The translations under genes were made by a program, and so were the position numbers. From Zygnema circumcarinatum SAG 698-1b (lineage: Eukaryota; Plantae; Zygnematophyceae): 64,000 bases of DNA. Positions 6,970 through 56,800 of this stretch are shown piece by piece (positions within the stretch are counted from its first letter, which is position 1; each line of letters starts with the position of its first letter). Location of the stretch: positions 2,108,001-2,172,000 of the forward strand of contig CM074815.1 of the NCBI GenBank assembly GCA_037447605.1, written 5' to 3'. The notes beneath the pieces are model-generated. The model worked only from the letters and a program-made list of their open reading frames with translations. It was not told the origin of the DNA and did not search any database.

Positions 6970-7626
6970 GTGTTGTCACCCATTGCCGGAAAACCGGTTG
7001 GTCTTTTTATCACCCGCTTGGTGGTCTGCCCATGGCTACTGCGACCACGCCTCTCCTCTCTGGGGAGCGTCAAGATGCTCCTCCTCGGCATGCACTAGTG
7101 GGAGGAGAGAGAGAGAGAAAGAGAGAAAGAGAGAAGGGAGGAAAGGAAAGGGAGTCGACAACGACGATGATGAAAAGATGGAATTTTCAAACAGCTATTA
7201 CAAGCCATTATCATGGCAATCTCTCAAAACCTCTCCTCTAAGGAGAAAAAAAAAAAACGGGGGGGGGGGGGGNNNNNNNNNNGGGGTGGTGGGGGGAGAC
7301 ACCATATTAGCTGAGAAATGCCTGAAACGCTTCCTCTGCTTGCTGCTATTTCTGCTCCCCCAATTCCTCCGCACCCATGTAAACCTTTACACGTGTAATT
7401 CTTTTCAGAAGCAAAATTTAATGTCATTCTAAAGCATCTAACCCTAACATTCTATGTCCGGCCTATTCCCAAATAACAACTGCGAGTCCAAATACAAATT
7501 TATGAGTTCCGATTCACCAAATTACAACGACATCCATTGCCTTTGTCTGTACTTCAATAAAAATCCTTCGGACCAAGGCATGCAGGCTTGCAGTGACCTG
7601 GTCACCTCCCATTACTTTTTACAGGC

Positions 7627-21672: not shown

Positions 21673-23244
21673 TCAGTGATGGTGGCTCGCTGGACTTCCT
21701 CCTCCACCATTCTGCTCTCGATTTAATCTCCGTCGAATGGCTTCCCGCTGCTCAAAAATCTCTGAAACCATCCTCTGCCGCTGCTGTTCCATTGGATCTG
21801 CCTGCCGCCCACCTCTAGTGAGAAACTCAGGATGCCTCCCCTGGGACCCCGGAATATCCCCCCATCGGCTGCGAGGCCGGATTGGGTTATCTGTCGGATC
21901 CCCTGAAGGCATTGCTCCCCCCAGAGGAACAGGTGGCAGCACAGGAAAGACCGGCGGGGAACGCTGGCTCGAGTTTGAGTTTGAATTAGGATTCGGGGGA
22001 AGCCGGCCACTCCTTATAGCAAAGGCTCCTCTCCTTCTGGTAGGAGGGCCTATGCCCAACCCCCAACTGATTCCCCGGCGCTGATGGCTCGGGCCTGACG
22101 CCAGCTGGCTCATGATTTCCATAATTGGAAACAAAAAATCCAAGTCTGTCACTGCATGTAATCCCTCGCTGTCGCTGCCATCCATAGCTTCTGCGTCATC
22201 ATCGTTGTTATCTTCAATCATATAGTCACCCAGAATTCTTGCGCCTGGCATCGCTGCTTGAATACTTGACAACACATCATCGGTGTCTTGTTGCCTCTGC
22301 AACCTCTGCCACTCTTCGACTCGTTCCGGATTCGCCTCCTGCGGGCGGGCTGAGGGGTGCACGTCGCGAGCATGGCTCCGCAGCATCCCATATGCGCCGG
22401 AAAAGTTGCAAGTCTCCTGCGAACAAGACCGAATTTTCAAGTCCAGATACGCGCGGACATCCTTCACTACCCTCCACCCGAAGACTGCGCTTCGGCAAAG
22501 GGGGCAGAGGAGCCCGCACTCTGCCTGCACAACTGCTTCACCTTTCGCCTTAAACGCCGCCAAAAGAGCCTTTCCATTTGCATCTTCATCAGCTTCTCCC
22601 TGCTCTTTTTGGCTCAAATCTTCTCCTCCTTCTCCTTCGACTCGCTCAGGGTTAGAGGGGACAGCGAGCACGCGGCCTCCGTTTCCGGCTTCGTTATTCC
22701 CCGGCCGCCATGGAAACCTTTCTTCACCTCCAGTTCCGTTCTGTGTTGTAGACGACACATGTATTCCCACTCCTCTTCGCATATGTGCCAAGGGAAGCAG
22801 TCCTATCGCGTTAACTTCCCTATGGCTACCTTCACTCGTGAGCACAAGCACTCGTCGCCGAGCACCGCCACCATCTCCTCCAGAATTAGGGTTAGAAACT
22901 TGGTTGCCTGCTGCTGTTGCAGGAGTCGGAGTTGCAGACGGCCACCGTCGTGTCCTGCGGAACTGATCAAGGCAATTCGAGTGGCGATGACTGGTGTCGC
23001 ACATGAAGGGCTGACACCCTTTCTCGTGCTGACTGCATATCAATAGCACGGCGTTGTGAGGAAATTCCATGCAAATAGGGCAGTTTATCTCATCCCACTG
23101 CTTTTGCAAGGAATTCTGAGGACTGCGCAACCGTTTTCGGCTTTGCTGCGACCTCTGAGACTGTTTGCTTTCATGTGATCTGCTCTCCGAGCCACCGCGC
23201 CGATTCAAAACACTAGGGTTTGCCTTCCTGTCTTCCTTCGCCAT
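21673..23244 (-). CDS. DUF1644-family protein (plant Cys/His-rich, RING-like N-terminus)
   Basis: 523-aa single-exon ORF with WDEINCPICMEFPHNAVLLICSQHEKGCQPFMCDTSHRHSNCLDQF, LLCPLCRSAVFGW, RSCSQETCNFSGAYGMLRSHARDVHP and DVLSSIQAAMPGARILGDY, the conserved DUF1644 blocks. Confidence 0.9.
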   Translation of the reverse strand: MAKEDRKANPSVLNRRGGSESRSHESKQSQRSQQSRKRLRSPQNSLQKQWDEINCPICMEFPHNAVLLICSQHEKGCQPFMCDTSHRHSNCLDQFRRTRRWPSATPTPATAAGNQVSNPNSGGDGGGARRRVLVLTSEGSHREVNAIGLLPLAHMRRGVGIHVSSTTQNGTGGEERFPWRPGNNEAGNGGRVLAVPSNPERVEGEGGEDLSQKEQGEADEDANGKALLAAFKAKGEAVVQAECGLLCPLCRSAVFGWRVVKDVRAYLDLKIRSCSQETCNFSGAYGMLRSHARDVHPSARPQEANPERVEEWQRLQRQQDTDDVLSSIQAAMPGARILGDYMIEDNNDDDAEAMDGSDSEGLHAVTDLDFLFPIMEIMSQLASGPSHQRRGISWGLGIGPPTRRRGAFAIRSGRLPPNPNSNSNSSQRSPPVFPVLPPVPLGGAMPSGDPTDNPIRPRSRWGDIPGSQGRHPEFLTRGGRQADPMEQQRQRMVSEIFEQREAIRRRLNREQNGGGGSPASHHH

Positions 23245-27700: not shown

Positions 27701-30700
27701 GACAGAAGTGCAGGAGGAAGCACACGAAATCACTCGGTAAGAGTCTGACCCGAGAGAGGGGGGGGAGGGCGAGAGTGAGAGAGACAGAGAGAGACAGAGA
27801 GAGTAAGAGCAGAAGAACGAGAGAGTGTTGCGCCACTACGAAAAATAAGAGGTTTCACGTTGGTGTGGGCTAATTGCATTCATGTATAGTTCATGAAGGT
27901 AAGTTTTGCAATTAGCATGGTTCAGGGACGATCTATTGTTTAGTATAAAATGAAAGTCAAAGGGAGAATTTAAGAGTCATGGGTTTTGTACGTGGCCTAT
28001 TAGAATCAGATCTTAAACTGGGATAGGAAAATTAGAGAGGACAGGCCTCTTCAGTTTTGAGCTGCATCAACAATGGTAGAAGACCAGATTTCCATATTAC
28101 ATATGTTCTATATGTCTTGCGTCCATTTATCCGCAGCTGTCATCCACATGTTCCCCTCTCACTCTCCATGCATGATAGTGCAACACATTCAGAATGTGTG
28201 TGTGTGTGTGTTCTCTATACACACACAACCACACAGTTGACATCCATTCTCTATCTTATTCTAACACATTTTCATATGACAGACGAATAAATGAAGAATT
28301 TGGGCGTGAAGGCTATCAGCCCGTGGTGCTTTTGGAACGACATGTACCACTCTATGAGAGAATTGCTTTTTATACTCTAGCAGAGGTCTGTGTTGTAACT
28401 GCTGTACGCGATGGAATGAACCTAATTCCGTACGAGTACATTGTTTGCCGACAAGGAGGGGACCCACAAGCAAGATCAGGAAGCGCTTCACTCTTATCCA
28501 GATCATCAAGCACCTACGGAAGAAGCCCACCAGGATTTGGACTTCTGAAGCAGGAAGACAGAAAGAAGAGCATGTTGGTGGTGTCAGAATTCATCGGTTG
28601 CTCTCCTTCCCTTAGCGGAGCCATTCGAGTGAATCCGTGGAACATTGAGGCTCTAGCAGATGCTCTCAATTCAGCCATCACAATGCCTGATTCTGAACAG
28701 CATCTTCGACATGAGAAGCATTACCGTTACGTCAGTACACATGATGTGGCGTACTGGGCACAGAGCTTCATGAGCGATTTCGAACGCACTTGCAGGTATG
28801 TTAAATTGAAAAACATGTCATCCACAATGTCGACTTCGTCTTCAAATATGAATAGCCCCGAATGAGGAATTGAGCCTCGTTATGATAAAACCTAGCACAT
28901 GCAATCAGTAGTTTTTGCATGCTTTACATGTGCCCCCAATTTCTCCTCACAATACTTTGGTTCATTGTATGCAGAGAACATAGTCGTCTGCGTTGTTATG
29001 GGATAGGTTTCGGCCTCGGGTTTCGAACTGTGGCTCTAGATCCGAATTTCAGGAAGCTGCAAACGGAACACATTGTGAGAGCATATAGACGGAGCAAAAG
29101 CCGAGCCATATTGCTGGATTATGATGGTACTATGATGCCACAGGTAATACTCTTCTCAAGCCTTAGACTCGATAGTTGCATTCATACACATGCATATGTG
29201 CATGCTTTGTTGGTTGAAGCCCATATTGTTTCTTCAGCACTAATTCTGGGAATCGTGATCCATTATCCCATACACAGGCTTCGATCAATAAGACTCCGAG
29301 CGCTGATGTCATCTCGCTTATAAACACGCTCTGCAGCGACCCAAATAATGTTGTCTTCATTGTGAGTGGGAGGGGCCGTGGAACATTGAGCGAGTGGTTC
29401 GGGCAATGCGAGAAACTGGGTTTAGCTGCGGAACATGGCTACTTTTTCAGGTCAGTTTGGTTACTCGATGTATTTAGTCAAACAAAGATTTGGTCGATCC
29501 ATGGCCTCATGTCTATTGCAGAATCGCTTAAAGTTAATGCCGAAAGACTCTGTTAAGAAGTGTCAATGTACTCGATTGATGCGTTTCAGGGTGTTAGCTG
29601 AGCATGAATCGTTTCAGAACAAAAAGCTAAGGGGGGGGGAAAGGAAAGAGGTAACAAAGGAAGATTAACTGAGTAGAATGTGACTCTATCTTATGTTGTA
29701 GGTGGGACGGAAAGTCCGACTGGGAAACAAGTGTTCCGCAAATAGACACTGCATGGAAGGATGCAGCCCTGCCAGTAATGGAGCTATACACAGAGAGTAC
29801 GGACGGGTCGTATATTGAAGCTAAGGAGAGTGCTCTTGTTTGGCATCATCGAGATGCCGATCCTGACTTTGGATCCTGGCAAGCCAAAGAGCTGCTTGAC
29901 CATTTGGAGAGTGTTCTTGCAAGTGAACCTGTGACTGTGAAAAGTGGGCATCATATCGTTGAAGTGAAGCCTCAGGTAAGCCCGAGGGAGGGGAGAAAGG
30001 GAGGAGGGATAATAGTGAATTGGGATGGAGGGGGGGGGCGAGTCCGGCTGGTTGTGGGAGGTAAACAGAGAGAGAGAGGGACGGAGAGATTGAGGACGAT
30101 GGAGAGAGTTTAGAGGTTGAGTGGGAGAGGCGAGGGAGTGGGGGGAGGAGGAGAAGGATAGGGATAGGGATAAGGGATGTTGATGATGGGAAAGAAGACA
30201 GAGGACGAGGGGCAGAACACAAGGTAGGAAGAGGAAGTGGGATGTTTGAAAGAGGCAGAGAGGGAGTGGCGAGGCGTAGTGAGAGAGTGGGCACTTAGTC
30301 AAGTATGAAAGGAATGGGAGGGAGAGGGATGCTGTTTTTAAATCTTCGTTTTGGTGTCCTTCTCCTTGCAGGGTGTAAGCAAAGGCGTAATTGTGGAGCA
30401 GCTCCTATCCAACATGGTTCAGAGTCCCCGAAAGGCGCCCGACATGGTTCTATGTGTAGGGGATGACCGGTCCGATGAAGACATGTTCGAACGCATAGAA
30501 GCCATCATGGCAGCTCCCCCCCAATCGCTTGTTGCCGAGGTTTATGCCTGTACGGTGAGTGCAAAGTACAAGACTTTTGTTTTGCACTTCTGCTCACTAT
30601 GCTCATGGTTGTGTAGCCTTTCTTCAGTTCAACCATTCTTAGCATTCTTAGTATAAGAATGGGTGAAGGCAAGATATAGCTGTCGGTGTTATCTCTCCCG

Positions 30701-33260: not shown

Positions 33261-34597
33261 TCATATCTTCGATGTGGGGGGGATGCCAATGTGAAAGTCG
33301 ACAAACGCAGAGCTCTCTACGATGGGGTAGACCGTCTCCTTCATGACCCTCATATGGTCAGGATGCGTGGCATATACTTTCAAGTCCTCTAATGTTTTAT
33401 GAGTAGAAAGGAATCCCCAATTATGCCCCTTTGATCTTGCAGGGGCAAAGTTGGGCCCTACAGTGACTTGAGATACTCCCGGAATGCCCCCCTCGTGCCC
33501 TCTCAGCCCCTCCACCATGGCCCTAATGGCGCCCTCCTCGGTGCCCTCCTTGATCTTCATCATCGCTGAGTGGATCACCTCCACGCCCGGGTCCACCGTG
33601 GGAGAGGTCAATTCCACCTCCCAATCCACTGCCATCAGGTCTTCCATGATGGGTTTACACAGTTCCACCACAACAGTAACATGCTCCTTGGAGTCGGAGT
33701 ATTGCTTGAGAGCTTCCTGACTCGCGTAACGGCCGTAAAGCGCATGGGTCCACCCTCCGTTGTCTACGCCTGGAACGGGAATGTGTTGGCCCACATGGAG
33801 CTGCATAACGCTATCGAGCGATTCAAGAGAACGGAGTCCTGATACGAAGGCGGCGACTTTCTCAGGAGGAGTGTCCGCCTTCACCTGCAGAACTTGTTCA
33901 ATCACATGAAATCAGAGCCCCAATGAAGCTTCTCAGAAGCTGTAATTACTCAAGGAATCAAAGCCACATAGAAAGATAATCCTATAAAACTTCCATTGTT
34001 CGAATTTCACATTCTGGTATATGGGAACTCTAAAGACACACCTTCTCCCTTCTCCTCTCCCTCTCCCTCTCCCTCTCCACCTCCCCTCCCTTTTCCCAAC
34101 TCTGCTCTCCTCTCTCGCCCTCTCAACACCTTCTACTTCACCCTTCCCATTTCCCCGTCCTAATCCTGCCCCTGTTGAATGTGCTTGAGGATCTAATGGT
34201 TGATGGAATTTCCGATCCATAAAATTAGTTTTAGGGTTTTCAGCTGACCCATCTGTCTTTATACCGAATGCAGGCTCATGCTAATTTACTCTATTTGTAG
34301 GTTAAAAGAGCCTTGGAATAAATTTACCTTAAAATACACGATGTGTTCAACAACCTTGGTCGCCATACTCTCTCCTGCTGCTGCTCTCACAATAAGAGAG
34401 CGCTGCTCCTGACTGCTATTCGTAACAGCTCCGTAAATTTTTCGCGCAGGAAATGATGAAAACTTCAGGTGCCCTAAGCGGCTGCTGGCAGCAAAAAAAA
34501 GTGCTGTCGCAGACAACAAATAAAAGTAGCGGTTGTTGCAAACTTCACACTTCAACTCGGGTTTTCCGCGGATATTGAGAGTAAGTCCTGCAAGCAT
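33261..34597 (-). CDS. Stress-responsive alpha/beta barrel (Dabb) protein with two barrel repeats, ~297 aa
   Basis: Exons 34597-34328 and 33884-33261 (GT-AG, phase 0). Barrel 1: VVEHIVYFKVK...WTHALYGRYASQEALKQYSDSKEH. Barrel 2: VIHSAMMKIK...GPNFAPARSKGHNWGFLSTHKTLEDLKVYATHPDH. C-terminus is SKI. Confidence 0.9.
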
Positions 34598-39059: not shown

Positions 39060-41743
39060 ATGGTGCAGCTAGAAACCCCCCCTCGGGGAGGTCCCAGGTC
39101 TCTTCGCCTGCTGGAAAAGGTCGATTTGGAGTGCGAGAGCGTGTTAGAATTTAGTTTGAACTCTTCTCTTATTGAAGGTTTAGCAAGGAACTTGAAGTTT
39201 GAAGGGGCAATTCAGCTGCCTGAGACCCTGCTGCTTGCCGCTTATTATACTCTTCTATGTCGATACCACCCGTTCATGAATTCAGTCACAGTGGCAGTGT
39301 TTCCGAGGTCATTTTTGTTAAGAAAATTCGAGTCTTCTACGGAGGATAAATTCTCAGAAGAAAGAAAGAAGACGTGGAGGGAAGTGCCGGTGAAGGTTAA
39401 GCTTCAAGAGGAGGAGGAGGAAGACTTGGAAAAGGTAAAAAAAATAAAAGTATTAACAATTCGGGACATTGTCGGTCAAGTCAGACAAGCCATGGCTGCC
39501 GAAGGAAGCGGCGAAAATTTCAATTCTGTCAGTGAAGAAGGAAAGGAAAAAGTAGGTGAAGAAAATGCTCTTGGGGCAGCTTTTGAAATTTATTTGGAGC
39601 ACCAAAAAATCCTCAGCTCCACGAGCGGAAATTTTTCAATTCTTCTGCGGCTGTCCAAGAATGGGAGTGGTTCAATTTGTGGGAATTTTTTTTACGATAA
39701 AAGATTTTACGACGCGGCATCGGTAGCCCGATTAGCGAGTAACTACATTTGCCTTCTGGATGGAATTTCGAGGAATACTGAATATTTGCATACTCCGTTA
39801 TATGAGTTACCGGTTCTCTCCGACATAGAACGGCATTTGGTGCTGGATGTGTTCAGCAAACGGAGCCTTCAGAGAGCTCTCCATTCGGAGCACGCCGAAG
39901 ATATTTCGCTTGTTGATATTATTAGAAGACAGTTTCAAAATCTATCCGGTAAAATTGCAGTAGTTGATAAAAGGGGCTTTATAACATATGGAGACCTTTA
40001 TATGCGAGCGAGACAGCTGGCATTGTGGCTGTTGAGGAGGGCAGAGAGGGGAGGGAGGGGGGAAGGAGAGAGGGAGGAAGAAAAGGGAGAGGAGACCGAG
40101 AGGGAGATGACTAGGGACAGGGTGGAGGGAGGAGAATGGGAGGGAGAGGGGAGAGCGCCGACAGTCGTGGGCCTCGGAATGCACCGAGGAACGGAATGGG
40201 TTGTTTCTATGTTGGGAGTTCTGTTGGCCGGCATGGCGTACTGTCCGTTGGACCCAACGTATCCGACGGCTCGTCTTGAAAAACTGATAACTGGAACGGA
40301 AGCGAAAGTGGTACTGGTAACGGAAGAATGTAAAGAGATTTTTGAGCATGTGAAGGGGGAGGGTCGAGCGGAGGTAGAGGTTGTGGTAGTGGGAGGGTGG
40401 AGAGGAGGGGCTAAGAATGAAAAGGGATGTGAATTTAACGACGAATCTAAATGGGGATATGGATATGAATGTAAGTGTGAGAACAGCTGTGAAGGGTTGT
40501 TAGAGAGGGCGCGACCGAACGGAGAATCGGTGTGCTATGTGCTGTTTACTAGCGGGTCAACCGGTGAGCCAAAGTAAGTTCTTTTACTTTCTTCGGTTTG
40601 AAGAGAAGAAGAGGAGGGTTCTCTTTGAGCTTCTTTTGCTGCATTGCGATTTTGGGTTTTTTTGGGGTTCTGGGTTTCTTGAAGGCTCGTAATTAAACCT
40701 TAATGTATGCTCTTCCCCCAACCCCCCCCCCCCCCCTCCCCCCCGCCCCCCAAAAGAGTGAAAACGAACTCGAATTTCAATTTCACTTGTACTTTCAGTT
40801 GAAACAAAAGATTCTGTAGAGCAGCAATTCTGTCCATGTGAGTATTTTGCCAGGTATGCTAATTTCAATTTTAATTTTCCATGTCTTTCAGTTCAGTGCT
40901 CTTCCTCGAATGTGAACTGATTTTTTATGTGTGCTTCCCCCCCTTTTTTTTTTTTTTTTCTTTTTTCTTGAACGATCTTGCAGAGGAGTGGTGGTTCAGC
41001 ACAAAGGCGTGCTCAACATGGTGCGTGCATTCCGCCACGTGTTGCCACGTGGCACTCCCTCCGACACCCGCGGCCAGCTGTCCGCCATGACCTTTGACCT
41101 CCACGCGATGGACGTGTTCTGTGCGTTCGACGTCGGCGGAACTGTAACTGTGTGCGACAAGGAAACGCTGTTGTCGGATCTCAGCGGGTTCATCGAACGG
41201 AACGGAGTGCATGGAACTGTGATTACGCCGACAGTGGCGGCGCTGCTTGAACCCGAAAATGTGCCCTCCCTGCAATGGCTCGCTTTTGGGGGGGAGGCAG
41301 TCCCTAGGGCACTAATAAACAAGTGGATTTCAGCAGGTAAATTTTAAATTTAATTTTTAAATTTTAAAAAATAATAATAATAATCGAGTTGGTTGGCTTA
41401 GATTAGAGGGGTTATATTTAAGTAAAATTTAGCTGTTATTTTTTTTTTAACTTCAATTTGCAGCTTTTTGCAGGACGAACCGTGATAGACCATTATGGCC
41501 CGACGGAGTGCTCTGTGGCTGCGGCTTGCCACGTGTGGAGGCCTGGTGATGACGTGGCAGATCACATCGGTAGACCGCTGGACGGTGCACATGTGAGAAC
41601 ATGCGACGCAGTTTTCAGTTCGTTGAAACTGAACGCATTTGTTGTTTCTTTAATTCAGTTTCTTTTTCGTGTGCGACGATGTTATTAACAAGGAGTGGAG
41701 GGGAAACTTTGAAGGAAGAGAGAAAAGCAGAAGCAGAGAGGAG

Positions 41744-41787
<44 letters not shown>

Positions 41788-42787
41788 CCGTTACATGCTC
41801 GTCAGATTAACCGTATCGCACAACGGAACTGCGCAGATCTATGTGCTGGGCCCCAACTTGGAGCTTCTTCCGATCGGAGTTCCCGGAGAGCTCTGCATTG
41901 CAGGTGTCCACGTGTCACTCGGCTATTTGAAGAGGAAAGATCTGACCAATCGCGTGTTCCAACGGAATCCGTATTCCGTTGGGCGCCACGACCGCGTTCT
42001 TTACAGAACTGGCGACAGGGGGCGGTGGCTCCATGAAGGGACAGTTCAGTTTTTGGGCCGAATCGACTTCCAGGTAAACAGTTACATGAAAATTCCCTTC
42101 TACCTTTTCTTTCAAATTTTACCATTTTCACTTCAATTTTTTTCTTTTTTTGTTGTGGGCTTCTTGTCGTCCTTGCAGCGATCTTCTTCACTCGTTGTCC
42201 ATTACTAAAGAATGTTTAAAATTTTTAAAATATCCCTATTATTTTTTTTTGCCTTCATTTCAGGTGAAAATAAACGGCAACCGAGTGGAGCCGGGCGAGG
42301 TGGAGGAGTGCGTGAGCCGCGTGACAGGTGTCGCGCGCTGCGCGGTCGCCCTCAGGACGGACGAGCGCGCCGGACCGTACCTGGCGGCGTACCTCGTGAT
42401 GGAGAGAGAGAGAGGGAGAGAGAGGGAGGGGGAGGGGGGAGGGAGGGAGGGGGAGGGGAGGGAGGGGGAGGGGAGAGGGAGGGAGCAGGAGAGGGAGAGA
42501 GAGAGGGAGAGGGAGAGGGAGATGAGGGCGAGGGTGAAGGCGGCCCTCTCTGCTGAGCTCCCCTCCTACATGGTGCCGACCGCTTATGTTATTCTCGACG
42601 AGTTTCCGCAGACTACGTAAGGCACTCGCTTGCCTTACTCTCTCTTTCTCTCTCTCTCTCTCTCTTCCTCTCTCTCTCTCTCTCTCTCTCTCCGTCTGTT
42701 CCTCTTTCCGTCCCTCGTTCTCACTCTCGCTCCCCCTCCGCTCTTCTAATTTGTCCTTGTCCTGCTGTTCCCTTCCATCTTTTCTAT

Positions 42788-42836
<49 letters not shown>

Positions 42837-45661
42837 CTCTCTCTCTCTCTAAATCTGCGTTCCACGTATCGACAGGTCCGGCAAAGTCGACCGGAAGCAG
42901 CTTCCCCAGCCCTTGCCCGAAGCATTTGTGGTGCGGGAGGAGGGAGAGGATGGGGGAGAGAGGGAGGGAGAGAGGGAGGGAGAGGAGGGAGAGAGAGCGC
43001 AAACCTCCTTTGAAAGCGAGGAGGAGCGCACAGTGGCTCGAGTCTTCAACGAGATTTTGGGGCTAAAATTGCAAAAAGTTTCCCGAACTTCCAATTTTTT
43101 CTCTCTTGGGGGAAACTCCTTTCTTGCCTCTCAAGTGGTAGCTCAACTCCGCCACGTGTTCGGTCTACCGCCGCCCTCTCTCACAGTGAGAGACTTGTTC
43201 CACTCTCCCATAGTAAAAGATCTCACTCAACTTCTAATAGAGAATGGAGGGAAGGAGGGGATGGGGGAGCAAAGGGACGGCGGTAGAAACGAGGTCAACG
43301 GAGTCAATGAAGTCAAAGTAGTTGACGGATTCAACAGAGTCAGTAACGTTGACTTTGCGTCGATAGTAAGAGAACTCTTTGGGATGAGGAAGAAGGGAAA
43401 GGAACGGTCGAACAAACTGCAGGGAAAGCGACGGTCACTGTTTAACGGAATTGCCAACGGAACGGAGGACGGTGGGAAGCATGGAACGAGGGTTCCGCTG
43501 TCGTATGCGCAGGACATGATATGGCTCGTGCTGCAGATTCTGCCTGAACCGGAAGTGCTGAACATCACCGATGTGTGGAAGGTGGAGGTGAGCTTGTAAA
43601 CAATGATTAGAAAAAAAAATAAAAATAAAAAATAGATAGTACATAAAATATATATATTTATAAATAAAAAACCAAAAAAAAAAAAAAATAGAAGTAATTA
43701 AAAAGTTAGTTAAAGGAGATGGCATTGACCTCACGATGGCGATGATGCCATCAAATGTACATGGACAAAATCAGCATCATGGGGAACCACGGGGAACTGG
43801 GCGCAAAGGACCTGAAGAAGTTAGTTAATTAATCAGACAAGAGAAAGTATACCCACTTTAAAGAACAAAAGCAAAAAGAAAAAAAAACGAGGAAAAAGGG
43901 ATTCATTAAGGGAGGGAGGGAATTAATGGTTTTTTGCTTTTCTTTTTTTGATTCCAGGGAGCATTAGACGAGCAGCGACTCGAAAGGAGTATCGCGCGGC
44001 TCCTCCGCCGCCACCAGGCGCTCCGTATCCGTTTCGTTTCCGGAAGGTCCCCCGCCGCCCGCCCGGTCAACGCGATTCTTCGGAGGTGGGGCCCACACGG
44101 AAGCGTGGCGCACGGAGACAGTGCCACGTGTGCCTCCAAAATCTCATCCGCGCTGGCCTACGCCTTCGGCCCCACCTTTCTGCGACACATGCACCAAATT
44201 GTCGGTCAATGCGTTGACCAGGTTGACCAGGACCCGGAAATTGTCCCCTTCCAGCTGAACAAAATCGATATTTCGCAAATTTTGGACCCCGAAAAGAAGG
44301 CGAAGGCGGAGAGGGAGGCCCTCGAGGAGGCGAGGAGGCCCCTCCGTTGGGGGGAACGGGGACTGCTGTTCCGTGTCACAGTTATACGGATTACGGGAAA
44401 CTCGGAACGGCTCGTGTTCGTCTTTTGTCACATGATTTTCGACGGAATTTCGGCGGGAGTTTTTTACAAAGAACTGGAAAGGATTTTTGAGAATGAGGAG
44501 GAGGAGTTGGAGGAGGTGGAAAGGTACGGACAGTTTGTGGAGTGGGAGGAGAAGTGGCTGAAAGGGGGGGCGGAAAAGAGGGAGCTCCAATACTGGAAGA
44601 AGCTTCTGGGAAGGGACCCGGAGCCTCTCCGATTACCCCTAAAATCTTCGGCAAAGAAAGTAATTTCCGCTCTGCCCTGCAGAGGGGAGTGGGTGGAGAT
44701 CTATGTGGACGCAGTTACGACATCCGTAGTACAAAATTTTGTACGGAGCATGGGAGCCACTCTCAATATGGGCCTCCTGGCAGCCTTCCACTGCGTGCTG
44801 TTCCTTTTTTGCCGCCAAAAAAAGGTCATAGTGGCAACGCTTGTGGGGAGGAGAGTGCTGGCGTCACACCAGGGAGTGTTGGGGCACATTGCTGACGTCA
44901 TGCCCATAGTCGCCGATTTCGGCTTTTTGGGGGGGAAGGAGGAGGTAGGGAGACAGGTGGGTGAGAGTTTGGGAGAGGAGGTGGGAGAGAGAGTGGGAGA
45001 GGGGGTGGGAGAGAGAGTGGGCGAGGGGGTGGGGGAGAGTGTGGGAGAGGGGGTGGGAGAGAGAGTGGGAGAGGGGGTGGGAGAGAGAGTGGGAGGGGGG
45101 GTGGGAGAGAGAGTGGGAGAGCGGGTGGGAGAGGGAGTGGGAGAGGGAGTGGGAGAGAGAGTGGGAGAGGGGGTGGGAGAGAATGTCCAAAAGCAGAAGC
45201 TTGTGGAGGTGGGTGAGGGGGTGGGAGACAAGCGAGAGAGAGTGGGAGAGCTTTTTAAGGAGGTAGTAGTGCAGGTGAGAGAGAGGACCCTGGAGGCTAT
45301 GGAGAACCAATCGGTGGTGTTCCGCTGCATAGCGAGTGAGGTCCTCTCCCACCCCGATCTGGCGAAGGCCCCTCTCATTCAAGCCATCTTCAACTTCTTG
45401 CAACCGGGTGGAAACTTTAGCCCCCATGGTTTAAAATTGGGGTCCGCAAAAGCGGAATATGATCTCGCGGCTTCGTGGGAGAGAGAGGGAGAGGCTGCTC
45501 TCACTCCTCTCTGTTTAAATGTGAGAGAGCAGAGAGATGGGAGTCTGAGGGCGAGGCTCGTCTTTCAGGCGGATGTGTATGGGAGGGAGATGGTGGAGGC
45601 CATGGCGGCGGAGTATAAGGCCATATTGGGGGCCATAGGTGCGGGGGGTCTAGAGAGTTAG
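39060..45661 (+). CDS. Single-module non-ribosomal peptide synthetase (half-C / A / T / C), 7 exons, ~1663 aa
   Basis: Exons 39060-40573, 40984-41336, 41474-41592, 41837-42073, 42264-42616, 42876-43587 and 43958-45661 sum to 4992 nt in frame. A-domain motifs [72 protein letters not shown] domain FFSLGGNS (Ser ~43117). C domain LSYAQ...RHQALR...CHMIFDG (44426-44446). Confidence 0.93.
43720..43815 (+). repeat. Dispersed repeat family, copy C (truncated), inside NRPS intron 6
   Basis: GGCATTGACCTCACGATGGCGATGATGCCATCAAATGTACATGGACAAAATCAGCAT...GGGGAACCACGGGGAACTGGGCGCAAAGGACCT aligns to copies A and B. Confidence 0.85.
44945..45185 (+). repeat. Coding tandem repeat (12/24-nt unit, VGERVGEG) within the NRPS terminal C domain
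   Basis: GTGGGAGAG(AGA/GGG) units repeated in frame in the last NRPS exon. Confidence 0.9.
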
Positions 45662-46711
45662 GATTTTAGGCTTGTTGAGAGAGGCTTTAGGGTCTTGAAA
45701 CTGTTATAAAGATTTTATTGGCTAATAAGAATATGCGGTTGACTAAAGAAGGGAATGGCTTTGGGAAAGTGCGGATATGTTGGGTGTGCCTCCTTGCGTC
45801 TCCCTTGGAGAGAGAGAGAGAGAGAGAGAGAGACCTCCCCTCCCTCTCTCTCCATTTACCAGGAACTCTCCTCTCTCTTGTCGTTCCTTTCCCTCTCCTC
45901 TCCTAGTTCTCCTTCCCTCCCTCGCTCCCCACAAGTATTGTACCTCTCCCATCCAGGCCCCTTCCTCTCCTCTCCCAGATTTGAGTTTTCGGATTTCGGT
46001 TTTATTTTATTGGTTCATCCATTAGTTCTAATATCGGCACAAATAGATATCGAGGAAACTGCGAAGGGTTCATGTTGCACATAATAGCAGCTTTTTCACA
46101 TTTCAAACTTCCTGTTTCCGTTTGAATTTCAGTTATAGAAACGAAATGAATGTGACAGGTCTAATTATATGAACATAGTCGCGCTTGTCAGTTTAACAAC
46201 TGAAACTGAGAACGCACGTGCCCTACTTCTACCAATCTATCAAGCGTACACCCTCCTCCTGGAGCCCAAAATCTGCAACTGTATGCTTATTCCAATTATG
46301 AACTATGTCTCTCGCTCTCTCTCTCGTACTGCAATGTCCCACTACCATCCCTTTCTCTCTCCCTATCTCTCCTTACCACCCTTTCCTCCACTCCTCCCGC
46401 TACGATCTACCCTCTCGTCTTCTCCCTCCCTCTCCACCCCTTACCCCCTCCCTCCCTCCCTCCCTCCCTCCCTCCCTCCCTTCTCCCTCCCTCCCTCTCC
46501 CCCTCCTTCCCTCTTTCCCCCCATCCCTCCCGCCCCTTCCCCTTCCCTCCCTCCCTTTCTCTCCCTCTAGCCTTCCCCTCCCGCTTCCCCTCCCAACCTC
46601 TCTCCCTCTAGGCCATCTCCTCCCTCCCTCCCTCCCTCCCNNNNNNNNNNCTCCCTCCCTTCCCTCCCTCCCTCCCTTCCCTCCCTTCCCTCCCTCCCTC
46701 CCTCCCTCCCT

Positions 46712-47876
46712 CTAGGCCGCCCCCTCCGGTGCGACCTCCGCCTCCGCATAGTCCTGCGCGCAGAGCATGAAGGCGAGGTAGGCGGGGAAGAGGCAGTACG
46801 TGAAGTTGAGTCCCACGAGCTGCGACCCGACGATGATGAGCGCCATGCCCCCCCACGACTGCGCGAGGTTCTGGAGGGCCACGTGGCACACAAACACGAC
46901 CGCCCCAACCGCCGCAACCGTGACGCCCGTCGACCGAGTCCGCGGGACGGCCCCGACCGCCACCAGCACGAGGTAGAGGCCGTACAGGACTTCGAGCACA
47001 CCCAAAGCGATCGTGATCTCGGGGTAGAAGACCATGTAAGGTGGGGCCACAACGGGGCTCATAAAGCGGCCGCTGCCGAGGCCCTCGCGGAGGATGGCGC
47101 CACAGGCGAGCTGGGTGCCTCCGCCAATGAGGACGAAGGCGGTGAAGGTAACGAGGCGGGAGCGGTGGTACTCGCCGTTGTAGATGGCTCCCTGGCCCGT
47201 TTGGAGCTTGTGGAGCTTGAAGGCGACGAAGAACTGGCTGCCTTGAAGACAGAAGCACACGGCAATGGAGCCCAAGATGCCCATGGCGGTAATGGCACGT
47301 GTTTGGTCGAGAGAGAGACCCATGATGGCGGTGTCGTTGCGGGCCTGAGTGAAGCCCGGGGCCGCCATAGTGTAGACGACGAAGGTGAACCAGCCCAGGC
47401 ATTGGCACAGGATGGTGCCCATAGTGGCCATGGGTGAGCCGATATTGAGGATGCATTGGGCCAGGCCGACGGCGAGGCCGGATAAGCCGAAAAGGACTTC
47501 AACCACTGCGCGAAAAAGAGAGAGACAGGAAATGAGAGGAGAATGGGTCGTCGAATAGGAGCGAAACTTGAACTGAACGAACGGCAGATTAATAATATTA
47601 GTAATATTAGTGGAAGGAGGGAGGGAGAGAAGGAGAGGGAGGGAGGGAGGGGGAGGGAGGGAGGGAGGGAGGGAGGGAGGTACCTCCGCCAATAAGAAGC
47701 ACGACGGGCGGGAAGGTGTGGTAGTTTCCGCCCCACTTGTCGGACGGCGTGTTGATGACGTTATCCGTACGGACGACGCCCTCCACGAGGATGAAGGCGG
47801 AGATGACCGCGAGCAGGCCCGAGGTGCGGACCACCTCCGCGAGGGAGGGCGCGGAGGGCTTCATGGCGGACCCCAT
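46712..47876 (-). CDS. Uncharacterised multi-pass membrane protein (~328 aa) with an internal repeat
   Basis: Exons 47876-47684 and 47505-46712 join in frame (GGA G|GTACCT ... CGCAG|TG). About 8-10 hydrophobic helices; strong GC3 codon bias; no family recognised. Confidence 0.8.
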
Positions 47877-48972: not shown

Positions 48973-49145
48973 GAGCGAGTCCCCTTTATTAGCGCAGCGG
49001 GCAGCACGCCGTCCGCCGCGGGCGACCTTTCTCTCTCCCCCTCGCACTTTTCGCGCCATTTCTCGTGCTGCAGCGCAGCGCTTCGTTCCCCCCGGAGGTC
49101 CTTTCCTTCGTGCGAGAGAGCGGGCAGGGAGACGAAGGAGACGAC

Positions 49146-51165
49146 ATGGCGGTGGAGAACGTGGAAGAGTCCAAGGGGCGGGTCACAGTTTTTTCAATTT
49201 CGGGCTGCCCGCATTGCAAGGCTGCCAAGACCCTTCTAAAGAAGAAGGTTCTCCCTCCCTCTCTCTGTATCTCCTTTTCTCGCTATCCCTCTCACTCTCT
49301 CCATCTGGCGAAAGCGTATTTCTCTCTCTCCGTCCACCCCACTCTCACACCCTCTCTCTGTCACACACCCTCTCTCTCTCTACCCTTCTCCTTCTCACAC
49401 TCTGACATGAAATTTTTACCTGCATTCCACTCCATCATTGATCTACTGTACATACCTCTCCCCTACTACTTCTCGCTCCCTTACTCCCTCTCCTCCCTCT
49501 CTACCCTCTTCTCCCCCTTCTCCCTCTCCTCCCTTTCCTCCCTCTCCTCCCTCTCCTCCCTCTCCTCCCTCTCCTCCCTCTCCTCCCTCTCCTCCCTCTC
49601 CTCCCTCTCCTCCCTCTCCTCCCTCTCCTCCCACTCCTCCCTCTCCTCCCTCTCCTCCCTCTCCTCCCTCTCCTCCCTCTCCTCCCTCTCCTCCCTCTCC
49701 TCCCTCTCCTCCCTCTCCTCCCTCTCCTCCCTCTCCTCCCTCTTCTCCCTCTTCTCCCTCTTCTCCCTCTTCTCCCTCTCCGCCCTCTCCTCCCCTTCCT
49801 GCCGCTCCTCCCTCTCCCTCTCCTCCCTCTCCACCCTCTCCTCGCGCTTCTCCCTCTCCTCCCTCTCCTCCCTTCCTCTCCTCCCTCTCCTTCCTTACTC
49901 CCGCTCCCCTTTATTTTTTCCTTTCCTCTTTTCAGGGCGCTCACTACGTGGAGATCAACCTCGACGTGTACCCCGAGAGGCGCGCAGAAGTGCAGGAGCG
50001 GAGCAAAAAGACCTCCGCCCCTCAAATCTTCTTCAACGACGAATATGTCGGAGGAAACGATGCGCTCCAAGCGCTTGAAGCCGCCGGAACACTCGATGCC
50101 AAATTAAAGGTAAAAACATAAGCCCTACTAAAAGGCGCAAATTCGAGGTAGAAAACAAACGTTTCTGCGAGGAGGCTCGTCGTTTTGTGACGTCAGCAAA
50201 CTAAAACCAGACCGGTTTATGATGTCAGTATTGGTTGGTTTTTGGGTTCAGTGGGTTTCTGAGACGCCCGCGCCGCCGTCTGCTCCGGCGCCGCCGGCTG
50301 CCAAAGAGGGGGCGGGGGAGGGGGAGGTTCAGACTTTGGAAAAGCGAGATGAGTATGCGGATTTGATGGGGCGGTTGAAACAAGCAGTGAAGGTTTCCGA
50401 TCATTTCGTGTTCCCCCAGATTCACAAAAACTGTTTCAAGGGCGCCGAAGCAATTACTTTTCTTGCGACTGATCAGAAAATTAGTCAGACTGAGGTGAGC
50501 TTCCTGCTGGAAATTCAGTCTCAATGCTGTCGTTTGGGTGGGTACGGCGAAGGAGGATGGGGAAGGGGTTGAATGTTGTGATTGTGGAGGACAAATACCT
50601 TTGAATTTAGGAGACAATGCCTCCAATTGTAGGGGAAATTCCTTCCATTCTACGCTTGATTCGAGGGAGGAATCCTTCAATTTTAGTAATAAAATCTCCT
50701 TCTCTCCCTCCCACATTTCTTGCTCATGCAGGCAGCCACCTTGGCCCAGAAGCTTCTCGATAAGCACTTCTTTCGCAGTGTGACTGGGTACGGCCCTTCT
50801 CCTCCCCTCTTACCCCCTCCCTCCATGCCTTACCTTTTCTAACCATACGTCTCCTGCCTTGACCCATCTTGACCCATCTTGACCCATCTTGACCCATCTT
50901 GACCCCATATCCTATCTTGCAGGGATTCGAGCAAGGTGGAAGGTTCGGGCCTTTACCGCTTCCTGGAGGACCGCATGGCTCTCATGAAGCACCGCTGCCT
51001 CAACTTCACCGGAAAAATCGACGCCGTTGAGCCGCCCCCCGCGACGGAGGTCGCCGATCAGCTCCGCCGCCTCATTCTCGCCATCTACGACGAGTTCCTC
51101 TCCGACGACGGGAGAGGAGTCGACTACAAAGGCATCGCCACAGCCGAGTCGTTCCGGAGGTGCTC

Positions 51166-51284: not shown

Positions 51285-52333
51285 CTCTCTCACTCTCTCC
51301 CTCTCCCTCTGTCGCCCCCCTCTCTTTCACTCCCTCTCTCTCTCTCTCTCTTTCGCTTCCTTCTTATATTTGTCAAGTTTAACAAATCTTGCTTTAATTT
51401 AGCCTACCGGCCTGACCAATGTTTGTGGGACCATTGATTATTAACCAGGTATAAGGTGAAGGCGGAGACACTCCAGCGTGTGAATCTCACGTCTTTGAGT
51501 CGCGAGGAGAAGCTCGCATTCTTCATTAACATTTACAACGCGCTGGTCATTCATGCCACCGTCGATGCGGGAAGCGGTCCCGAGAGTGCTCTTCAGCGCA
51601 AAGTTTTCTTCACCGACTACACCTACCTCATCGGAGGTCTCACATTTTCACTCTCAGAAATGGAAAATGGCGTTCTGCGAGCGAATCGCCGCCCTCCCTA
51701 TGCCCTCAGTAAGCCATTTGGGGCAAATGATGAGCGCGCGAAGGTACCCCACTTAGCTCCAAAACCCATCCAACCCTTTCCTTTTCCTTTCCCTCAAAAA
51801 CTTCGAGTCGAGAACAACGTCCCTTTGCTTCCTTCCCTTCCCTTAACCTTCAAACCGAAAGCCAACTGCGAAGATGCCTTGACCGATCCTTCCCTCCTTT
51901 CCCTTTTTTTTCTCCTTTTTTTTTTTTTTTTTCTCTTTGTCTCTCTTTTTTTTTTTTTTTCTCCTTTTCATTGCAGGTGGCCCTTAAGGAGCACGAGCCG
52001 CTTATTCACTTCGCACTCGTATGCGGCGCAAAGTCGTGCCCTCCCATTAAGACGTACAAGCCGGAGGGGGTCGACGAGGCCCTCAGAACGGCGGCTCGTT
52101 CCTTCTTTGAAGCGGGAGGTATTGTGGTCGACGTAGAGGCGAAGAGCGTCACTCTGAGCAAGATTCTGTATTGGTATCATGGCGACTTTGGCAGCTCAGA
52201 TGAGGAGATGCTGAAGTGGATCAGTGAGGTGATGGAGGAGGGAGAGAAGGCAAAGCTTTTGGACCTCCTTGCGAAGGGCAGTGTGAAGGTGGCGTACATG
52301 CCTTATGATTGGTCGGCAAATAGCAAACATTGA
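49146..52333 (+). CDS. Glutaredoxin-DEP-DUF547 protein, 7 exons, ~487 aa
   Basis: Exons 49146-49247, 49936-50109, 50252-50494, 50732-50787, 50923-51159, 51449-51743 and 51977-52333 (1464 nt, in frame). Grx active site GCPHC plus SAPQIFFNDEYVGG; DEP-like NCFKGAEAITFL...KHFFR; DUF547 EKLAFFINIYNALVIH, ENGVLRANR, EPLIHFALVCGAKSCPP, YDWSAN. Confidence 0.93.
49490..49870 (+). repeat. Intronic (CTCTCCTCC)n 9-mer polypyrimidine minisatellite
   Basis: Long near-perfect array inside Grx intron 1 (49248-49935); it explains the spurious (SSL)n/(EER)n/(RRG)n ORFs. Confidence 0.9.
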
Positions 52334-53856: not shown

Positions 53857-56800
53857 ATGGCTGCGATCCTCTCCACTCCTCCTCTCGAATCCTCCCTCTC
53901 CGCCTCTCCCAATGTCTCTCTGCCCACGTCTCTCTCTCATCTCTCCCGCCCCGATTCTCGCCATCACCATCCTAATCCTAACCCTAAAATCCCTAACCCT
54001 AGCACTACTCCAAACCCTAACCCTAATCTTAGTTCTAACCCTAACTCTACTTCCGCCCTTCTCTCCTATCTATCTCTCCTCCCTCTCCACACTCCCTCTC
54101 CCTCTCCCTCTCCCTCCCTCTCCCGCCCCCCTCGCCGCCCCTCCCCCTCCCCCTCCGCTACCACCACCCAGCCCTCCGCCCCCGGCAGCCGCGACCGCTC
54201 CCCTCTCTCCCTCTCCTCTCTCTCTGCCTCCCTCCCTTCTCTCGCCATCGCCCTCTTCTTCGGCGGCATCGGAGCCCTCGTGCAGTCCCTCTGCTCCGCT
54301 CTCCCTCCCGATTTCTGGCGCCGTTGGAAGCGCCTCTTTACTGAGCACGCCCCCATGGATCCCTCCATGCCCTTAGAGACGCGGCCCCCCACCACGATCT
54401 ACGACTGCCATGGAACCGTAATTGCCACCATTGGCCCCGGCGGGTTCAGTTCGCAGAAAGACCCGTCAAAGCCCGGGGCTCCGTTGCGGGCAACGGACAT
54501 TCCGGCGTACATGTGGCAGGCTGTGATTGCTTCGGAGGATCGGAGGTTTTTTGATCATCAGGGGTTCGACCCCAAGGGACTTACCAGGGCAGTGCTTTCG
54601 CTCGCCAGGACGGGGGGAGGGAGTACCATCACGCAACAGGTAGGGATTAGGGTTCAGGATTTAGGGGTCAGGGTTTAGGGTTGAGGGAGGGTTTTGGGTT
54701 CTGGGTCAAGGTTGTGGGGTTTGAGTGAAGGAAGGGTTTTGTGGAGGAAGGGGTAGGGGGTGGAGGAGGGAGAAGGAGGGGAGGGCCGGGAGGGGGGGGT
54801 GGGGGAGGGAGGGAGGGAGGGAGGGAGGGAGGGACTAGGTCTCTAGAGGGTTTAGTCTTATTATTGGTTTCGGGGTTTGGGGTTTGGGGCGTAGGGTTGA
54901 AGGTCTGACTCACGTTTTGCATGTGCAGTTGGTAAAGAATGTGTTTCTTAACAACGAGAGGAAATGGGCTCGGAAGCTGGCGGAGATTCTGCTGGCGATT
55001 TGGCTCGAGACGAAAATGTCGAAATGGGACATTTTACACCTTTACCTTAATAAGGTTGGTGCACTGTGGCATTTTTAGCATCATGTAATGTGTGTACATT
55101 AGCACTCGATTATTTGATCCTATGATGTGATTTCAGTTTTCAGTTCCGTAATCCTACGTAGTTTCATGATCAGTATAGGTTGGCTAGAATTATATTACTG
55201 GCCTTCTCTCTCTCTCTCACGCTCCCCCACTTCCTTTCTGTCTTCCTTAGCCATGTCAGCAAACAACACATAGAATTTCGTTTAGCGAACTCGCTTGGTC
55301 AGCCGCCCTTCACTTTACGATGACAAATGCAAGTAACCGCTGTTTCAGTTTAGTTAACGGAACTGGTATCCATGGAACCGCATTCTGCAGATTTATTGGG
55401 GCCATGGAGTTCACGGAATTGAGGCCGCCTCCTCTTTGTATTTTGGAAAACATCCGTCCGCTCTCACTCTCAGTGAATGCGCCATGCTGGCAGGAATCAT
55501 TCCTGCGCCGGAACTTCTCTCTCCTTACAGAGATCCTAGCAGGTTTCTCCCTCGTCCACCTCTCTCTCCTTCTCCCTTCTTCTCCCTCTCTCCCTCTCCC
55601 TTCTCCCACCCTCACCAGTCCCTCCGTTTCCCTCTCCCTTCTCTCTCTCTTCCACTTCTCCATCCATGCTCTCTCCCTCTCCCGTCTATCTCGCTCTTCC
55701 CCTTCTCCCTCCTCCTTCCTCTCTCCCTCTCTCTCCCTTTCCCCATCTGGCTTCTATCGCTCCACACACAAGGAAGCTTTCTCCTCCCATACTCCCCCAC
55801 CTCTCTAAGCAGCTACACCATAAACGGTTACGTTAAAAACAAATTTCCTCTGAATTCTACTTTGCTGCTGCCGAATTCGTCACTATAACCTAGTTTATGA
55901 TATACTTTTGATACTTGTTTTGTGATTCACAGGGGTCGTAAGCCGCAGGCCCGGGCCCTCCGCAGAATGGTCGAGGCGGGATTTTTGGATATGAAGACGG
56001 CGAAGGCGGCGATGCAGGAGCCTCTCGTCTTTGGCTCGGAGGGGAAGTCAGGGGCTTCGGGGCCGTGGAGGGCTCCGTACTTTGTCAGTGAGGTGAGGGC
56101 AGAGACAAGGAGTGGGAGCGGGAGTGGGAGAGGGCGAGGGAGAGGGAGAGGGAGAGGGAAAGGGAGAGGGTGAGGGAGAGGGAGGGGGAGAGGGAGAGGG
56201 AGAGGGAGATGGACTAGGAGAGGGAGTGAGCGAGGGAGGGAGCAAGGGAATAGGGGAGGAGGGGAGGAGGGAGGGAGGGAGGGAGGGAAGGGGAGGGGGA
56301 GAGGAGGGAGGGAGGGAGGGAGAGAGAGGAAATCTCATTAGGTTCCAGTTCAAATGTTCGTTACATTTTCGCTGCTGGTAAATGCTGTCTGACGCTCCAT
56401 CCTTTCGTTCATTTTTTGCGAAATCTTCGTGTTTGAACTTTCTCTTGCACGACTCATTTCTTGCTCAATGTGAAGATAATACTGTTTTCGATGGTCTTGT
56501 TGACGCAGGTGCTCTACGAGCTGAGCCAAAAGTACGGAAGAGAGGAGGTCCTTAGAGGAGGCTACCAGGTACCTTCCTTTTTCCAATAACTGCATTCGCT
56601 CTACCTTATTCCTTCTCTCTAATTTTAAAAGCCCCCCGAGCCCTGCTGCTGTTTATTTGTCCATCTCACTCGAAAGAATGCGCAGTGAAAGAGAAAGAGA
56701 AACGAGAGAGAATTGGGAAGAAACTCCAGTCGAGAACCCTTCAAGTCCCTGAAATCTCACAAGCTTTGGAAACCCCAAACCCTAGAACCCCTGAAGCCTT

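Follow-up and report, generated by a model that had tools for sequence, protein, structure and literature searches.

The window analysed here is a 64,000-nucleotide (nt) stretch of the genome of the alga Zygnema circumcarinatum SAG 698-1b (contig CM074815.1, positions 2,108,001 to 2,172,000). Positions 39060-45661 on its plus strand hold a gene that, judged from its sequence, encodes an apparently functional one-module nonribosomal peptide synthetase (NRPS) of bacterial type. Seven open segments, joined over six GT...AG introns of 137-410 nt each, give a coding sequence of 4992 nt and a protein of 1663 amino acids with no internal stop. This rebuilt model is identical to the continuous frame of the original prediction, and the adenylation motifs, LGGNS site and terminal condensation domain claimed there were all found by Pfam and NCBIfam scans and by alignment. 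The claimed layout, a module of adenylation (A), carrier (T) and condensation (C) domains, stood for these three domains but missed that the first ~280 amino acids are half of a second C domain. The layout is half-C/A/T/C, with parts as follows.

39060..40573, plus strand: exon 1, with the start codon, the half condensation domain (amino acids 1-~280) and the start of the A domain up to motif A3
39060..39899, plus strand: N-terminal remnant of a condensation domain, comprising its C-terminal lobe but not the HHxxxDG half (profile against PDB, AF2/Foldseek)
39906..42897, plus strand: adenylation domain (amino acids ~283-866), split by introns 1-5, motifs A1-A10 (Pfam, TIGR01733, 1AMU alignment)
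40984..41336, plus strand: exon 2, A4 region and substrate pocket (model, Pfam, 1AMU alignment)
41474..41592, plus strand: exon 3, A5 motif, HYGPTE (model, Pfam)
41837..42073, plus strand: exon 4, A6-A8 (model, Pfam, TIGR01733)
42264..42616, plus strand: exon 5, A8-A10, with a coding GA-rich low-complexity insert at 42402-42522 (model, Pfam)
42876..43587, plus strand: exon 6, A10 lysine, carrier domain, linker and C1 motif of the terminal C domain (model, Pfam)
43030..43236, plus strand: carrier domain (PF00550, E 9e-10), phosphopantetheine serine codon 43117-43119 in LGGNS
43477..45658, plus strand: terminal condensation domain (amino acids ~1060-1663; PF00668, E 4e-40), interrupted by intron 6
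43958..45661, plus strand: exon 7, stop codon included (model)
44956..45182, plus strand: 24-nt minisatellite, 9.5 copies, translated in frame as VGEGVGER repeats within a C-domain loop that varies across the family

Three of the splice junctions cut NRPS core motifs (A3, TGEPK/G; A8, DFQ/VKI; A10, QTT/SGKVDRK; the slash marks the junction). This would not be expected by chance. All six are gap-free against the proteins of relatives, including two from intronless transcript assemblies, P0028 and P0030; the latter is encoded by a 5380-nt transcript contig (L001) with one uninterrupted frame of 1485 codons. The exons have a GC content of 55% and the introns 38%. In six sequencing runs from three studies, 0.69-0.73 of the sampled 31-nt words of the span were present. 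If only words wholly inside the seven exons were represented, the expected share would be (4992 - 210)/(6602 - 30) = 0.728, and the observed shares thus indirectly fit a spliced mRNA. The short N-terminus is real, because an in-frame TAA lies two codons 5' of the ATG, the L001 transcript has an in-frame stop three codons 5' of its own ATG, and the family proteins that reach this end begin with MV(Q/L)LE or MALL.

Within the A domain, the AMP-binding match (PF00501) runs from exon 1 (amino acid 368 on) to exon 4, AMP-binding_C (PF13193) lies in exon 5, and the NCBIfam model for amino-acid adenylation domains (TIGR01733) matches exons 1-5. Motifs A2-A10, the carrier serine and motifs C1-C3 are readable in the family alignment, with A1 and C4-C7 being matched by eye alone. 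In a HMMER alignment to GrsA (1AMU), an aspartate stands at D235 and pocket positions 235-301 are placed; the remaining pocket positions were set by the YGPTE and GKVDRK anchors. Lys517 (GrsA numbering) is kept as the lysine of SGKVDRK. The resulting pocket code, DLMVAGHVAK, is the same in four members of the family and carries isoleucine at position 330 in Spirogloea; in two rows of the comparison, position 517 was outside the extracted envelope. None of 55 bacterial relatives has the code DLMVAGH(V/I)AK. With Asp235 and Lys517 both retained and one code fixed across the clade of one-module enzymes, the A domain is predicted to activate one alpha-amino or imino acid. The nearest textbook code is, we take it, that of proline, with four of ten positions identical and the other six conservative; this is no more than a weak lead.

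The GGNS of the carrier site (43108-43119) is kept in five of five family members. In the terminal C domain, motifs C1-C7 are kept when read by eye, and the active-site motif, CHMIFDG at 44426-44446, retains the second histidine, the aspartate and the glycine of HHxxxDG; relatives have NHLIxDG or SHLICDG. The nearest solved chains are the bacterial C domains of Txo2, Txo1 and TycC. Between motifs C2 and C3, the algal domain is ~60 amino acids longer than Txo2. This extra stretch is conserved within the one-module clade and, as judged by hidden Markov model coordinates, is absent from all C domains of a five-module relative from Mesotaenium (see below). No carrier lies downstream of the terminal C domain.

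The region preceding the A domain (39060-39899) has no Pfam match at E 0.01. A profile of the first ~280 amino acids, when compared with the PDB, matches residues 381-455 of the Txo2 C domain (E 5e-5) and also McyB, DhbF and TycC; in these solved condensation domains, the part matched is the C-terminal lobe with the C-A linker. An AlphaFold2 (AF2) model of the half-C is weak (pLDDT 53), and members of the NRPS condensation superfamily (C, starter C, X and Cy) make up 49 of the 50 Foldseek matches listed for it, the first 12 having E below 0.001. This model was used for fold class alone; a second model, for the terminal C domain of a relative (pLDDT 48), gave no usable structural detail. Alignment is confined to the C-terminal lobe, and no N-terminal HHxxxDG lobe precedes the A domain; a complete first condensation domain is absent. 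In solved modules, the C and A-core domains build a stable platform (PMC10510592). Therefore, the half-C, which lacks the active-site lobe, has probably been retained as a structural partner of the A-domain core.

The GA-rich tracts of the gene are translated in frame and sit where the inserts of relatives also vary, and at the site of the minisatellite the relatives have unrelated inserts or gaps. We read both kinds of repeat, from these alignments, as tolerated loop expansions and not as decay. Long (CT)n and (AG)n microsatellites also occur in introns 5 (42638-42850) and 3 (41735-41787), respectively, and the same GA/CT motif extends into coding sequence at 42402-42522 and 42935-42997.

When the terminal C domain was searched against 1.84 billion representatives, three single-stretch matches with 43-48% identity stood among giant bacterial NRPSs. 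These are a cluster from Spirogloea muscicola, a EukProt Trinity transcript and a Logan transcript contig. The Zygnema protein itself is absent from the protein databases searched, and in whole-protein searches the full-length relative P0030 stood in for it. The best matches of P0030 are Mesotaenium endlicherianum ME000153S01465, a Trinity transcript and Spirogloea SM000001S04630, followed by bacterial NRPSs (Archangium, Nostoc, Brasilonema and others) with 25-35% identity. Every organism-named match outside the algae is bacterial. The 120 best matches include no protein from embryophytes, fungi or chlorophytes, and these searches thus did not show the close, widespread green-plant orthologues of known function that would have refuted the original prediction; they gave no animal match either. 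The Zygnema protein is 44-48% identical to the Mesotaenium and transcript relatives (48% to Mesotaenium P0153) and 37% identical to Spirogloea P0154. A word-index search with exon 7 found no match, whereas a profile search did recover the Spirogloea cluster. No close relative turned up when JGI metagenomes and GTDB genomes were scanned with family-specific patterns, the best GTDB match having 37% identity.

By these searches, the enzyme belongs to a small family that is found so far only in zygnematophyte-type algae. Its organism-named eukaryotic members come from M. endlicherianum and S. muscicola only, two further transcriptomes also carry it, and the transcript assemblies P0028 and P0030 show that relatives are transcribed. 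The public Mesotaenium and Spirogloea annotations already contain the family without a name, and a literature search aimed at it turned up no NRPS described from zygnematophytes or from any other streptophyte alga. S. muscicola has two paralogue sets of three copies each (P0154 versus P0110/P0151/P0152). The second is annotated as C-domain fragments of 433-501 amino acids, which are probably truncated gene models.

These observations establish that the gene is native to the nuclear genome of a streptophyte alga grouping with the Zygnematophyceae, because it has spliceosomal introns, lies without a gap in a plant-type context and has relatives in zygnematophyte genomes and transcriptomes. The earlier argument against a contaminant thus holds, with the introns, the gap-free linkage to plant-type genes and the algal relatives all agreeing.

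The five-module relative is ME000131S00500 of M. endlicherianum (P0002, 6035 amino acids), in which a half-C at 242-507 is followed by five A-T-C units and a terminal C domain. In domain-wise scoring, its five A domains are far closer to the family than is any bacterial A domain. Trees of A and C domains, proposed with the original prediction, gave monophyly of the algal domains. In the A-domain tree, the one-module enzymes form a clade (100/99) in which Spirogloea branches first, and the five P0002 modules are its sister clade (96/92). Together they are separated from 55 bacterial A domains with support of 100/100 and a stem of 1.18 changes per site. The C-domain tree has the same bipartition (99) and places the one-module terminal C domains on a long separate branch (1.05). 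Because the five A domains of P0002 form one clade, its modules appear by sequence to have multiplied inside the algal lineage. P0002 thus shares with the one-module family its A- and C-domain clades, its half-C start and its terminal C end. It differs in having five A-T-C units made by internal duplication, other pocket codes (DQHQEGSVT, DLQQEGGVT and DVQVDGGVT) and C domains without the ~60-residue stretch.

A bacterial ancestry of the family fits these data, because the organism-named matches outside the algae are all bacterial and because colinear C-A-T-C proteins exist in cyanobacteria. The stand-alone cyanobacterial NRPSs P0219 (Fortiea sp., 1558 amino acids) and P0217 are colinear with P0030 over 98% of its length, have the same domain order and, like the algal family, end in a terminal C domain in place of a thioesterase. 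However, identity is 26-27%, and the bacterial first C domain is full and the genes are intronless, whereas the algal family keeps only the C-terminal lobe. The horizontal acquisition suggested earlier gains from the restricted eukaryotic distribution and from the nearest other named relatives being bacterial (25-35% identity). An ancestral zygnematophyte would have acquired the family from a bacterium. Introns and coding microsatellites would have been gained later, and in Mesotaenium module duplication would have built the five-module enzyme.

We consider it rather likely that this native nuclear gene encodes a bacterial-type one-module NRPS that loads one alpha-amino acid and whose terminal C domain passes the aminoacyl group to a free nucleophile. 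The A domain would activate the amino acid as its adenylate, and the aminoacyl group would be loaded onto the pantetheine arm at the predicted GGNS serine. The terminal C domain would then hand it over to a free acceptor, either an amine or a hydroxyl, and so release an aminoacyl amide or ester. Release onto a free nucleophile is proposed because there is no downstream carrier and because precedents exist. Kj12C of the rhabdopeptide synthetases is a C domain that moves carrier-bound groups onto free amines (PMC6195595), and VibH of vibriobactin synthesis is a C domain that uses a free amine (PMC10510592). In both, a carrier-bound acyl or peptidyl group is moved to a small-molecule amine, as proposed for the Zygnema enzyme. 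However, both are free-standing C domains, and neither came up among the close sequence relatives of the algal terminal C domain.

Several points count against this interpretation. The first histidine of HHxxxDG is a cysteine in Zygnema (asparagine or serine in relatives), the protein carries long low-complexity inserts, and both AF2 models are of low confidence (pLDDT 53 and 48). For transcription and splicing in Zygnema, the case is made by homology and by the shares of words present in the runs. The unrooted trees have a long algal stem, and no bacterial sister group or donor is resolved in them; distribution is the sole guide to the direction and date of transfer.

The enzyme could instead be a subunit of a multi-protein assembly, in which the terminal C domain joins its own aminoacyl thioester with the carrier-bound amino acid of another NRPS of the same genome to give a peptide. 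Single-module subunits working in series are known from rhabdopeptide synthetases (PMC6195595), the five-module Mesotaenium protein shows that such C domains can act between carriers, and Spirogloea has two paralogue sets. We nevertheless regard this arrangement as unlikely. The one-module terminal C domains occupy their own long branch, and their conserved ~60-residue stretch, which the five-module protein lacks, points to a changed acceptor side. In addition, no docking domains were seen and the window holds no linked partner genes.

Iterative or paired self-use, with the terminal C domain making a homodipeptide or diketopiperazine from two loaded copies, is quite improbable. Such a mechanism would make use of the sole carrier available in cis, and fungal terminal C domains can catalyse release or cyclization (PMC10510592). 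However, the algal domain is nearest by sequence to elongation-type C domains of bacteria (Txo1/2, TycC), the terminal C domain of fungal TqaA is not among its PDB matches at E 1e-5, and there is no sign of dimer-specific features.

We give still less credence to the idea that an old transfer left behind a relic, neutral or in decay, that makes no product. Loss of half of the first C domain, replacement of the first histidine of the C motif and several long microsatellite-derived inserts could all be taken as signs of decay. However, the 1663-codon frame is unbroken despite GA and 24-nt repeats that are prone to slippage, motifs from A2 to C3 including the carrier serine remain readable, and the pocket code is invariant between Zygnema and Spirogloea apart from V/I at position 330. 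Moreover, the inserts sit where the relatives vary too, and relatives are transcribed. On these grounds, we rejected a pseudogene.

Contaminant bacterial or fungal DNA, or an assembly chimera, is hardly credible and was rejected: NRPSs are typical of bacteria and fungi and a 10-N gap lies ~1 kb downstream (46641-46650), but the six GT-AG introns have AT-rich interiors, the sequence is uninterrupted from 7283 to 46640 across its plant-type neighbors (DUF1644, GT20, Dabb), relatives are present in independent genomes and transcriptomes of zygnematophytes, and the GTDB and JGI scans gave no close bacterial one.

Transfer of an aminoacyl group to a free acceptor, the function that we favor, has eukaryotic parallels. 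Insect Ebony, a beta-alanyl-amine synthase, is NRPS-like with one module and couples a single amino acid to free amines; its release domain, unlike that of the Zygnema enzyme, is not a condensation domain. The fungal one-module A-T-C NRPSs of fumiquinazoline and tryptoquialanine synthesis use a free small molecule as the acceptor for a single amino acid and share the A-T-C order with the algal enzyme. Fungal terminal (CT) domains carry SHxxxDx (PMC10510592), and the algal motif, C/N/S-HxxxDG, is likewise without the first histidine. However, with TqaA missing from the PDB matches and no fungal protein among the 120 best, this motif likeness is probably convergent.

The enzyme class itself is already known; what sets this enzyme apart is its lineage, a private code that is conserved, and ends that have been remodelled. 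Added to the earlier description are the half-C start, junctions that are gap-free against transcripts, the Mesotaenium and Spirogloea kin and the clade-wide pocket code. A wider reading, which we offer tentatively, is that this is a private, vertically inherited zygnematophyte NRPS family of bacterial origin, acquired before the crown radiation and remodelled by introns, half-C loss, the ~60-residue insertion and five-module duplication. The product of the one-module enzymes would then be a conserved amino-acid conjugate, perhaps of a proline-like imino acid.

Zygnematophyceae are the closest algal kin of land plants, and, to our knowledge, modular NRPSs have been treated as absent from the plant lineage. 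If the wider reading is true, the sister lineage of land plants would gain its first metabolite pathway based on an NRPS. An intact, spliced NRPS with a fixed code across the Zygnematophyceae would add a class of chemistry to streptophyte specialized metabolism and would extend the list of bacterial genes acquired around the plants' move to land. The five-module Mesotaenium relative shows that duplication of modules can extend an assembly line within a eukaryotic alga. Because the Zygnema enzyme is small enough for expression and assay, the question of its product is directly testable.

Runs of N in the window, 10 nt each, lie at 7273, 46641, 57271 and 61187. The NRPS gene and the DUF1644, GT20/TPS and Dabb genes are thus on one uninterrupted sequence, and two further neighbors lie beyond the gap at 46641:

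21673-23244: DUF1644 (E 4e-59)
28194-28865: GT20/TPS exon (E 3e-52)
49065-50078: glutaredoxin, a weak match under the Pfam cut-off (E 2e-4), beyond the 46641 gap
51456-52136: DUF547, beyond the 46641 gap

The neighbors named in the original prediction were recovered by Pfam for DUF1644, GT20/TPS and DUF547, with the glutaredoxin match being sub-threshold (22.0 versus 22.9 bits).

Other open reading frames (ORFs) in the window include one 5 kb upstream of the NRPS gene (33261-33905, minus strand) that has two stress-responsive A/B-barrel stretches (Dabb, PF07876). An intronless ORF of 700 amino acids (7627-9729, minus strand) has a UDP-glycosyltransferase domain (PF00201, E 9e-25). Past the 10-N gap, a 326-amino-acid ORF (46712-47692, minus strand) has no Pfam match and is seemingly rich in hydrophobic stretches. 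Farther on, an ORF at 53857-54678 (plus strand) matches the peptidoglycan transglycosylase family PF00912 (E 1e-15) and may be a plastid peptidoglycan (PBP-type) gene.

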